A DNA stretch of 64,000 bases from Selaginella moellendorffii (GCF_000143415.4 NW_003314266.1:1944463-2008462); one strand, 5' to 3'; shown: positions 15,939 to 18,185, numbered from the stretch's first letter. Made by a program: numbers and translations. The notes: generated by a model from the letters alone, not told the origin.

Positions 15939-18185
15939 ATGGAGTCCTCCACCGCCGTCGGGCCGGCTGGATTGTCGCTCACATCGGCGGACAGGCTTCG
16001 CATCTATCGTAAGTGTTTCCATGACCTGGACGAGCATCTCGCGCAACTCCACCAGGAAGGATTGGGCCCAAGCGATGCCGAGTTTGTGGCGCTCCAGGCC
16101 GAGATTCGCTGCTTGGAGGAGCTTATAATGCTCTTCACGGACATCACGTCGATTTTGCCCTCGATCGCGCCCAAATCGTAAGTGGTGCTTCCGCCCAGTC
16201 AGTTTGTTTTGTTTCTGAGTTACTTGGAATGCTGGCGACTAAAGGTTTTCTGGTTGCTTTCTTTCTCGCTTCAGAGTAACTGGAGATGGATTTGATCCTT
16301 CCTTACCGAGTGTTGACGGGTTGAATCTGTCACTAGTTACAGATATCTTGATGCTAAGCGCGACTTCCCCGTGGACAGTTTTTGTGGCCGAGCGTTCCCA
16401 GGTGATCGATTTCTCAAAAGTTTGACTCAGTCCTCACAATCACTTTCGCGTTCAGTGGCAAATTTGCTATGTCTCACCGAGCGTGAAGCGCGCGTTTGGT
16501 TGGAAGGCTTCTGAGCTTTTGGGAGTTCCTGCTTGGGATGGTTGTCACACGGAGGACATTCCGACTTTGCAGCGTGTAAGCTCCTTTGTTTCATTTCATC
16601 CTTTTAACACAAGGAATTTCTACATGCTAAGGTATTGCAGATGCTGCTGTTGAAAGAATGTGCGACAACTGGAACTTCTTTAGTGTATAGAAGGCTTAGA
16701 AAGGATCGTTCGTATGCTACTGTTCAAGCGACTGGCCGTGCTGTTGGAACCAGGTAGTTCCTTTCTGACTGCCTCGGCTTGTTCAGAAAAACTGTTTGTC
16801 CTCGCTTTTCAGGTGGTATGCCTGGGTGGAACAAGACATTATCAACAACAACGCATTGGTAAGGCTGGACTAGTTCAGGAAGTTAACTGAATGGGCTTGG
16901 TCTTTGCAGAATGGAACTCCTCAGGCACTCGACGTTCTATCAGATCTTCCTCTGTCCTTGCCAGCAAGCAAGTCTAGCACTAAAACAAGATCAGCAGACT
17001 CCGAAGGTGGTCCAAGTATTCGCTCCCGGAAGCTTTCTAGCACCCAAAGGCCCACGTTAGAAGCCGAAGGAAATACACGAGGATGGAACAGCACCGCTCG
17101 TCCTGCTTCTCCGCTGGCATCATTGCCCGGTTTGGAAAGACAAACCAGGCCTTCAAAGAGCAGAGGGAACGGTGAGAATGCTGAAGCGCACAGCGCAAGC
17201 CAACATTCCTTGGAACCCGATAACATGGCTGATGAAAACCAAGTCATGCTCAAGGTACCTTGTTCATCTTCTAGTAGGTGTTGAGACTGACTTAAGTTTT
17301 CCTTAGTCTCAGGGAATGAATTTGCCCATCTCATCTCATCTCAGCTTCTCAGGGTCTGTATTCCTAAGCCGGCTGTTATCGTGTATCACGAGTCGTTTGT
17401 CGAACTTATTTCTTATCTAGATCCGAAACACAGCCCGTGGAGAAACTGAGAAAAGGAAAGGCAGTACACGACGAGGGTGGAGCATCAAAGCCAAAGGTTC
17501 CAGGTACTCCTTCCCAAGTAGCTGCTTCTTCGAGGCCCGCTAGTGCACAACAAATTAACGAAGAGGTTGATCTTCTTTGGGGAAAAAAGGTGACATTCTT
17601 TCTACATTTAAGTTTAGAGCCAACCAAGTCAGTGTTTTTCATTGCAGATTTTGCTGGTTGAGGATGACCGAGTTAACAGAACTATAGCACAGAGGCTTCT
17701 GGAGAATCTCAAGTGTAACGTGAAAGTAGCGTGCAATGGGAAGGAGGCCTTGGATATATTACAAGAGGGAGCACCAGTGAAGGCGGAGGATATTGAGGAA
17801 GGAAAGGAGATACCTCCGCAGTTCGATCTCGTCTTGATGGATTTGCTAATGCCAGTGATGGACGGAACAAAAGCGGTGAGTGCTAGCGCTCTCTCTTCTC
17901 AAGTTTGTGAGCTCACAGCGATTCTACAGGTTCAATACTTTCGGGATTGGGAGGCCGAGCAAGAACCCCCGAGAAAGAGGATGGTGATTTTTGCGCTTAC
18001 ATCAAACGTTAGCGGTACGAAGAAATTTTCGTTTTCTCCTTTCGAGTTCTGAGGATCTCTCCTTTTTTTGTCCCTGGTTTTTAGATGGCGATATGGTGAA
18101 GTGCGCGATAAGTGGCTTTGATGAGTTTGTGAGCAAGCCATTGACGATCGACAAGCTCGTCGATCGTCTCCAGCCCAAGCACTGA
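15939..18185 (+). CDS. PAS-domain plus response-regulator receiver protein lacking a histidine-kinase core (11 exons, 537 aa)
   Basis: Exons 15939-16177, 16275-16401, 16456-16575, 16641-16753, 16813-16858, 16910-17254, 17313-17353, 17421-17589, 17648-17875, 17930-18014 and 18085-18185 splice GT-AG into an open 1614-nt frame. PAS: ICYVSPSVKRAFGWKASELLG...HTEDI...YRRLRKDRSY...EQDI. Receiver: ILLVEDD...FDLVLMDLLMP...ALTS...SKP. Confidence 0.82.

Follow-up and report, generated by a model that had tools for sequence, protein, structure and literature searches.

A kinase-less PAS-receiver gene of Selaginella moellendorffii and the conserved streptophyte family to which it belongs

Plant two-component signaling is taught with four regulator classes defined in Arabidopsis. 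The window analyzed here, a stretch of 64,000 nucleotides from Selaginella moellendorffii (GCF_000143415.4 NW_003314266.1:1944463-2008462, one strand), carries at positions 15939-18185 of the plus strand a gene whose product combines a PAS domain with a receiver domain and has no kinase part, and an earlier note, made from the sequence alone, had proposed that this could be a new plant architecture. The locus raises the question of what such a protein is: a genuine response regulator, a sink for phosphoryl groups or what is left of a histidine kinase. Based on spliced transcripts, profile searches and structure prediction, we find that the gene is intact and expressed, that it belongs to a family which, judged from its sequences, is old, vertically inherited and low-copy in streptophytes (from Klebsormidium to lycophytes), and that this family lies outside the type-A/B/C/PRR scheme. 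As to function, we see about an even chance that the product is a genuine response regulator, accepting phosphate within the His-Asp phosphorelay of plants, with an N-terminal hairpin-PAS interaction module as its output. The features on which the argument rests are the following (all on the plus strand; aa, amino acids).

15939-18185, plus strand: complete coding sequence of the PAS-receiver gene, 11 exons, 539 aa, RefSeq XP_024525639.1 (RNA contigs and database identity)
15984-16154, plus strand: N-terminal helical hairpin, aa 16-72, inside exon 1 (AlphaFold2 helices 16-39 and 46/47-72, alignments)
16327-16834, plus strand: PAS fold with N-cap helix, aa 98-207, exons 2-5 (Pfam PAS_3, AlphaFold2, Foldseek, PDB profile search)
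16835-17559, plus strand: disordered Ser-rich linker, aa 208-392, exons 5-8 (structure-prediction confidence, composition, variability in the family alignment)
17587-18170, plus strand: receiver, aa 402-535, exons 8-11 (Pfam Response_reg 66 bits, AlphaFold2 (beta-alpha)5 fold, alignment)
17840-17842, plus strand: codon of the phospho-acceptor Asp467 (LMDLLMP), invariant in the receiver alignment
17999-18001, plus strand: codon of Thr502 (ALTS), conserved receiver switch residue, invariant in the receiver alignment
18135-18137, plus strand: codon of Lys524 (SKP), conserved receiver lysine, invariant in the receiver alignment

The exon structure was settled by RNA contigs, since listing the GT..AG options alone left many models open. 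Part of the window is matched by 20 public runs from 12 studies, and the assembled contigs of four runs (one from each of four studies) were compared with positions 15700-18400; the runs are tagged as RNA by guess only, and contigs give no expression levels. All ten introns of the gene are skipped exactly in these contigs, every joint being present in two to four runs, and because the ten introns are removed exactly the contigs must derive from mRNA. They span about 15900 to 18232 with no joining to neighboring genes, and spliced transcripts of the gene occur in many runs. The earlier model of one gene with 11 GT-AG exons is borne out, and the gene is expressed. The spliced coding sequence (1620 nucleotides) gives a product of 539 aa which is letter for letter that of P0001, i.e. 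XP_024525639.1, “probable histidine kinase 1 isoform X1” of S. moellendorffii, a protein that RefSeq also names “hybrid signal transduction histidine kinase B-like”. The name “probable histidine kinase 1” is a misnomer for a kinase-less PAS-receiver protein. In the full-length protein, Pfam finds PAS_3 at aa 126-197 (32.0 bits, cut-off 25.6) and Response_reg at aa 403-535 (66.1 bits, cut-off 30.2), and nothing else: HisKA, HATPase_c, Hpt, Myb and CCT give no match at E<=0.1. Exons scanned one by one behave in the same way, with exon 3 matching positions 2-38 and exon 4 positions 42-75 of the PAS_3 profile, besides pieces of Response_reg.

AlphaFold2, run on alignments of the family, gave a mean predicted local distance difference test score (pLDDT) of 63 for aa 1-215 and of 51 for the full length. 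The segment between the PAS domain and the receiver (16% Ser and 9% Pro, much as the earlier note had described it) has a pLDDT of about 25 over aa 209-392, and since this stretch is predicted to be disordered the linker holds no hidden domain; together with the Pfam result, this upholds the earlier statement that kinase, Myb and CCT domains are missing. Across the family the linker is variable in sequence and ranges from about 185 to 430 aa. A basic-Ser motif at aa 252-259 (in exon 6, 16910-17254, plus strand; IRSRKLSS in Selaginella) is common to the land-plant members, a similar one being present in Diphasiastrum, Physcomitrium, Ceratodon and Sphagnum, and its sequence makes it a candidate target of phosphorylation by a basophilic kinase.

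The receiver is, as far as its residues tell, catalytically complete. Alignments of 11 orthologues show no or next to no variation at E407, D408, D467, T502 and K524 (in the corrected numbering the acidic pair is E407/D408, followed by D409), in agreement with what had been read from the single sequence, and the Response_reg (PF00072) profile, the (beta-alpha)5 fold and the catalytic residues all place the domain in the receiver superfamily. Between alpha2 and beta3 it carries an acidic insert (aa 442-462) which is specific to the family. Among solved structures, the receivers nearest to the family are that of the histidine kinase 8phn (64.6 bits) and AHK5 (63 bits), followed by AHK4, fungal kinases, SLN1 and CKI1, with ETR1 and bacterial regulators lower. 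This comparison with solved structures supports a receiver of the hybrid-kinase type, as had been suggested earlier, with AHK5 as the closest solved plant receiver.

For aa 1-215, AlphaFold2 predicts, besides the two helices of the hairpin (which had been anticipated from the sequence), an N-cap helix (98-107) and a five-stranded PAS core extending to residue 207; Foldseek matches this model with probability 1.0 to the PAS domains of FixL, DOS, ARNT and LIC_11128 (TM up to 0.75 on the target), and a language-model look-up with the same residues returned PAS clusters only. With a PAS_3 (PF08447) score above the cut-off and a PAS fold, the domain is a genuine PAS domain, as first supposed. When a profile of hairpin plus PAS was run against the PDB, the best matches, at E 4e-16 to 1e-5, were the PAS domains of ARNT, ARNT2, BMAL1, HIF and PER; those of bacterial sensors reached only about 20 bits. 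The animal ARNT/BMAL1/HIF/PER PAS domains serve mainly as dimerization surfaces. The PAS domain lacks the flavin-binding Cys motif of LOV domains (NCRFL), and its F-alpha helix (aa 157-166) has no His as found in heme PAS sensors; C152-H153 is part of a common CHxxD motif that is present also in ARNT PAS-B. With these absences, and with ARNT/BMAL1-type dimerization domains as the nearest PAS relatives, the gas or redox sensing that had been suggested for the protein finds no support, and neither does light sensing.

Hairpin and PAS together form the best conserved part of the family, with a mean column identity of 45% and 36 invariant columns; in the hairpin, R19, Y23, R24, L30, E55, L59, E60 and L62 are invariant. 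Run against the 302 proteins that were fetched, the hairpin-PAS profile scores complete family members at 142 bits or more and the next protein at 18 bits, with shortened Sphagnum models at about 77-79 bits. Among these proteins the module has no detectable relative outside the family and, from its sequence, is family-specific. The receivers separate as well, full-length members scoring at least 107 bits vs about 80 for the best outsider.

To map the distribution of the family, 1.84 billion representatives were searched exhaustively by HMMER with the receiver exon as query, and a word-based search with P0001 then gave the organisms. The HMMER search recovered P0001 and a small set of close relatives sharing the alpha2-beta3 insert. 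Members were found in another lycophyte (Diphasiastrum complanatum), in mosses (Physcomitrium patens, where the orthologue, XP_024375476.1, seems to be single-locus, Sphagnum and Ceratodon purpureus), in a leafy liverwort (Calypogeia fissa) and in streptophyte algae (Klebsormidium nitens, GAQ91844.1; Spirogloea muscicola; Closterium), with a further one in one more transcriptome and exon-sized fragments in metagenomes. The proteome search that the earlier note had recommended has in this way found the same architecture in streptophyte algae, mosses, a leafy liverwort and lycophytes. In the orthologues Pfam again finds PAS_3 and Response_reg and nothing else, with PAS_3 at 27-41 bits in five of them (P0002, P0006, P0007, P0010 and P0154); a divergent Calypogeia copy stays under the cut-off of 25.6, at 19.1 bits. 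In Closterium, PAS-only models with long Gly-rich N-termini (P0159/P0160) stand beside a separate receiver-only model (P0013).

A tree of the hairpin-PAS region recovers the mosses and an algal group, places Calypogeia on a long branch and agrees with the species tree at its resolved nodes. In moss fragments and in a mis-modelled Ceratodon protein, the reading continues directly behind “...MDGTHA”, the position of intron 9 in Selaginella, and because the read-through is at the same place this intron position appears to be shared between mosses and Selaginella. Within Selaginella, a second locus (P0266/P0267), which in this assembly is probably the other haplotype, shows six residue differences, of which five fall in the linker and the sixth at position 532; none of the differences falls in the hairpin, the PAS domain or the catalytic residues of the receiver, and the frame is intact in both copies. 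No seed-plant member was found in any search (HMMER or word-based), and because many seed-plant proteomes are in the collection their lack of the family is well supported. For ferns, hornworts and Marchantia, where no member was found either, the evidence is weak, since the word-based search is insensitive: with the N-terminal region of the Klebsormidium protein it returned the query alone, missing known relatives within the length range.

None of the known plant classes accommodates this protein. Type-A and type-C regulators have no folded domain other than the receiver, and here a hairpin and a PAS domain precede it; type-B regulators and PRRs are likewise excluded, because the receiver is C-terminal, Myb and CCT give no match and, unlike in PRRs, the phospho-accepting Asp is present. 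The type-C regulators of Arabidopsis (ARR22/ARR24) are alike in having an authentic receiver, apparently hybrid-kinase-like in both cases, and no DNA-binding domain, and a sink role is conceivable, but they hold little beyond the receiver, whereas the Selaginella protein adds hairpin, PAS and a linker of about 185 aa and its family was not found in seed plants. It is not a histidine kinase, having neither HisKA nor HATPase_c within gene ends that are fixed by RNA contigs and neighboring genes. Moss PAS-histidine kinases (PHK1/PHK2) likewise contain PAS and, at the C-terminus, a receiver, and according to Ryo et al. 2018 (PMC6137987) their distribution is similar: they occur in Klebsormidium, bryophytes and lycophytes, and neither ferns nor seed plants have homologues. 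By their description they are set apart from the Selaginella protein, which has a single PAS domain and no HisKA or HATPase_c.

Further afield, the fungal proteins Ssk1 and Skn7 have a C-terminal receiver that is preceded by a module for interaction or coiled-coil formation and by extended disorder, and their receivers control the N-terminal modules. The arrangement resembles that of the Selaginella protein, and the Ssk1 receiver (5kbx), the only part compared, is among the solved matches; there is no homology beyond the receiver, Skn7 having an HSF-type DNA-binding domain and Ssk1 no PAS. Animal bHLH-PAS proteins (ARNT, BMAL1, HIF and PER) provide the closest solved PAS domains and the top of the Foldseek list, and they share the order of elements (two helices, linker, N-cap helix, PAS), but the plant family has one PAS domain, no bHLH signature or basic region, and a receiver, which animals lack. 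Archaeal and bacterial regulators combining a receiver with PAS or GAF usually have the receiver N-terminal, without a hairpin or a long disordered linker. They resemble our protein in uniting receiver and PAS without a kinase (PMC8142344, for archaea), and no specific sequence relationship to the PAS module of the family was seen. That review mentions receiver-PAS regulators for archaea only, and a paper on eukaryotic kinases (PMC6324907) describes no kinase-less plant PAS-receiver family. In the literature searched (the Physcomitrella two-component system census of Ishida et al. 2010 lies outside it) we found no publication on such a family in plants and no accession number of its members. 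The claim of a new architecture is thus partly sustained: the protein does lie outside the type-A/B/C/PRR scheme with no paper found on it, but it is one member of an old family whose sequence models were already public, and what is new is the recognition of a conserved, unclassified regulator family with a restricted distribution.

How could such a protein work? In the reading to which we give even chances, an HPt protein would phosphorylate Asp467, and phosphorylation of the receiver would alter dimerization or partner binding of the hairpin-PAS module, which would act as the output, by analogy with Ssk1 and Skn7. Several points weigh against it. That HPt hands on phosphate to the receiver, and that the module serves as output, are steps that we infer; it would be just as conceivable for the PAS domain to sense a ligand and act upstream of the receiver; the AlphaFold2 models are of moderate confidence only and silent on inter-domain contacts; and the split of PAS and receiver in Closterium, probably a mis-annotation, could also mean that the two halves work apart or that a gene fission is real. 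A bolder version of the same idea, which we regard as rather unlikely, would make this family, with its ARNT-like PAS and coiled coil, a fourth authentic plant regulator class, a phospho-switchable dimerization factor or co-regulator acting downstream of PHK1/2, in one light- or development-related branch that was lost as a unit before seed plants.

The competing explanation that deserves most attention keeps the phosphorelay and removes the output: as a PAS-gated sink, the receiver would drain phosphoryl groups from HPt like the type-C ARRs, with a ligand or redox signal at the PAS domain setting the strength. The confirmed PAS fold, a receiver apparently of the hybrid-kinase/type-C kind (with AHK5, AHK4, SLN1 and CKI1 among the top solved matches) and the lack of any DNA-binding or enzymatic domain all agree with it. 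We nevertheless consider it doubtful, if possible, because the PAS domain has neither the LOV Cys motif nor an F-alpha His and is nearest to the interaction type of ARNT/BMAL1/PER, not to the FixL, DOS or LOV sensors; because the extreme conservation of hairpin and PAS surface across streptophytes better fits a conserved protein partner than a simple gate; and because a disordered linker of such length makes tight PAS-receiver allostery less obvious. If, on the other hand, the hairpin were a divergent HLH, the protein would be a nuclear regulator, the plant counterpart of bHLH-PAS factors, switched by receiver phosphorylation. It does share the layout of ARNT, in which helix, loop, helix, linker, N-cap helix and PAS follow one another, and ARNT, ARNT2 and BMAL1 lead both the Foldseek list, with matches over about 200 columns, and the sequence matches. 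The root-mean-square deviation of those structural matches is about 14 A and their E-values do not improve on those of PAS-only matches, a Pfam search of 11 members up to E<=10 gave no HLH, the hairpin profile on its own matches only designed coiled coils in the PDB (E>0.2), there is one PAS domain and not two, and a basic region is missing before helix 1, which in Klebsormidium is preceded by four residues. An HLH identity was accordingly rejected, since the layout is similar but the sequence gives no support, and we hold this reading to be very unlikely.

Neither of the readings that start from a histidine kinase fares better. A functionless, decaying remnant of a PAS hybrid histidine kinase would explain the C-terminal receiver, placed as in hybrid kinases, and the kinase names in RefSeq; it is contradicted by conservation and appears highly improbable, given that the frame is intact in both haplotypes with changes that avoid the folded domains, that spliced transcripts are present in many runs and that members from Klebsormidium to lycophytes all retain the catalytic residues and an architecture without kinase. 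The related proposal of the earlier note, a PAS-histidine kinase that lost its kinase, finds no backing, as no protein with the hairpin-PAS module fused to a kinase was found in the data searched and the kinase-less form is already present in Klebsormidium; because of the latter, any loss of a kinase would have been very early, before the Klebsormidiophyceae split. The same note had seen a weak H-box in CFHDLD, from which one could imagine a phosphotransfer protein whose hairpin is a DHp- or HPt-like bundle, with His28 relaying phosphate to or from its own receiver. His28 lies in helix 1 of the two-helix hairpin and is kept in 10 of 11 orthologues, but in Klebsormidium it is a Lys; Pfam finds no HisKA or Hpt in the 11 N-terminal regions at E<=10, and hhalign of the hairpin profile against a HisKA profile of 25 sequences gave a probability of 0.1%. 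On these three results an H-box/DHp identity of the hairpin was rejected as unsupported, and a phosphotransfer role is to be regarded as extremely improbable. With these weighed, a phospho-accepting regulator whose output is the hairpin-PAS module is the reading that we carry forward.

Streptophyte algae, mosses, at least one liverwort and lycophytes would, on the sequences compared, keep a further regulator that is strongly conserved and couples a PAS module with a receiver. The automatic names (“histidine kinase”, “uncharacterized”) hide the family, which is a warning against counting these genes as kinases in censuses. Through the family one can also study how early land plants use branches of the phosphorelay that were given up by seed plants, and the Physcomitrium locus, apparently single, makes a knockout straightforward.

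Exons and introns of the Selaginella gene were placed by the RNA contigs as follows.

16178-16274, 16402-16455, 16576-16640, 16754-16812, 16859-16909, plus strand: introns 1-5, all GT..AG
17255-17306, 17354-17420, 17590-17647, 17876-17929, 18015-18084, plus strand: introns 6-10, all GT..AG
15939-16177, 16275-16401, 16456-16575, 16641-16753, 16813-16858, 16910-17254, plus strand: exons 1-6
17307-17353, 17421-17589, 17648-17875, 17930-18014, 18085-18185, plus strand: exons 7-11
17307-17353, plus strand: micro-exon 7, 47 nucleotides (joints 17254/17307 and 17353/17421 in the RNA contigs)

A 10-exon model built by eye had its frame broken after exon 6 and was discarded. The product of 537 aa given in the earlier note equals RefSeq isoform X2 (P0265), which lacks Ser-Gln 331-332 and fits an acceptor at 17313, 6 nucleotides downstream of 17307; all four runs compared use 17307, which gives 539 aa. 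Intron 9 (54 nucleotides) is in frame and free of stops, so that its retention would insert 18 residues at the start of receiver helix alpha3, and no such retention was seen in the RNA contigs compared. Contigs from runs X1 and X7 (17305-17449 and 17381-17587, plus strand) extend into or through unspliced intron 7 (67 nucleotides); its retention shifts the frame, and some unproductive or unprocessed transcripts are therefore suggested. Around the phospho-Asp codon, over 33 nucleotides (17822-17854, plus strand), contigs with a depth of up to 541 (run X1) match and then diverge on both sides. These high-depth contigs stem from another abundant receiver-containing transcript, sharing the FDL..MD..MP motif at the nucleotide level. 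At the 5' end, an ATG at 15919, out of frame with the coding sequence and 20 nucleotides ahead of its start, begins an open reading frame of 69 codons (15919-16128, plus strand) that overlaps the start of the coding sequence and may be a regulatory upstream open reading frame; one contig starts at 15900 and would contain this ATG, others starting at 15920-15922.

On the same strand just upstream, an intron-less open reading frame of 145 aa with a hydrophobic N-terminus (15285-15722) matches Pfam Stress-antifung (DUF26/Gnk2-like, 42.5 bits) and, from its sequence, looks like a gene for a small secreted Cys-rich protein; because it stops only at 15722, the PAS-receiver gene has no space on its upstream side for exons encoding a kinase. 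Downstream, from 18309 onwards (plus strand), the next gene opens with the N-lobe of a Ser/Thr protein kinase (GxGxxG, VAMK; Pkinase fragments in two exons), and its RNA contigs begin near 18287, separate from the PAS-receiver transcript. Farther along the window, the composition profile is strongly AT-rich at 32001-34000 and 52001-64000 (GC 0.29-0.40 vs about 0.45-0.55 elsewhere), and these stretches may be repeats or transposon remains.

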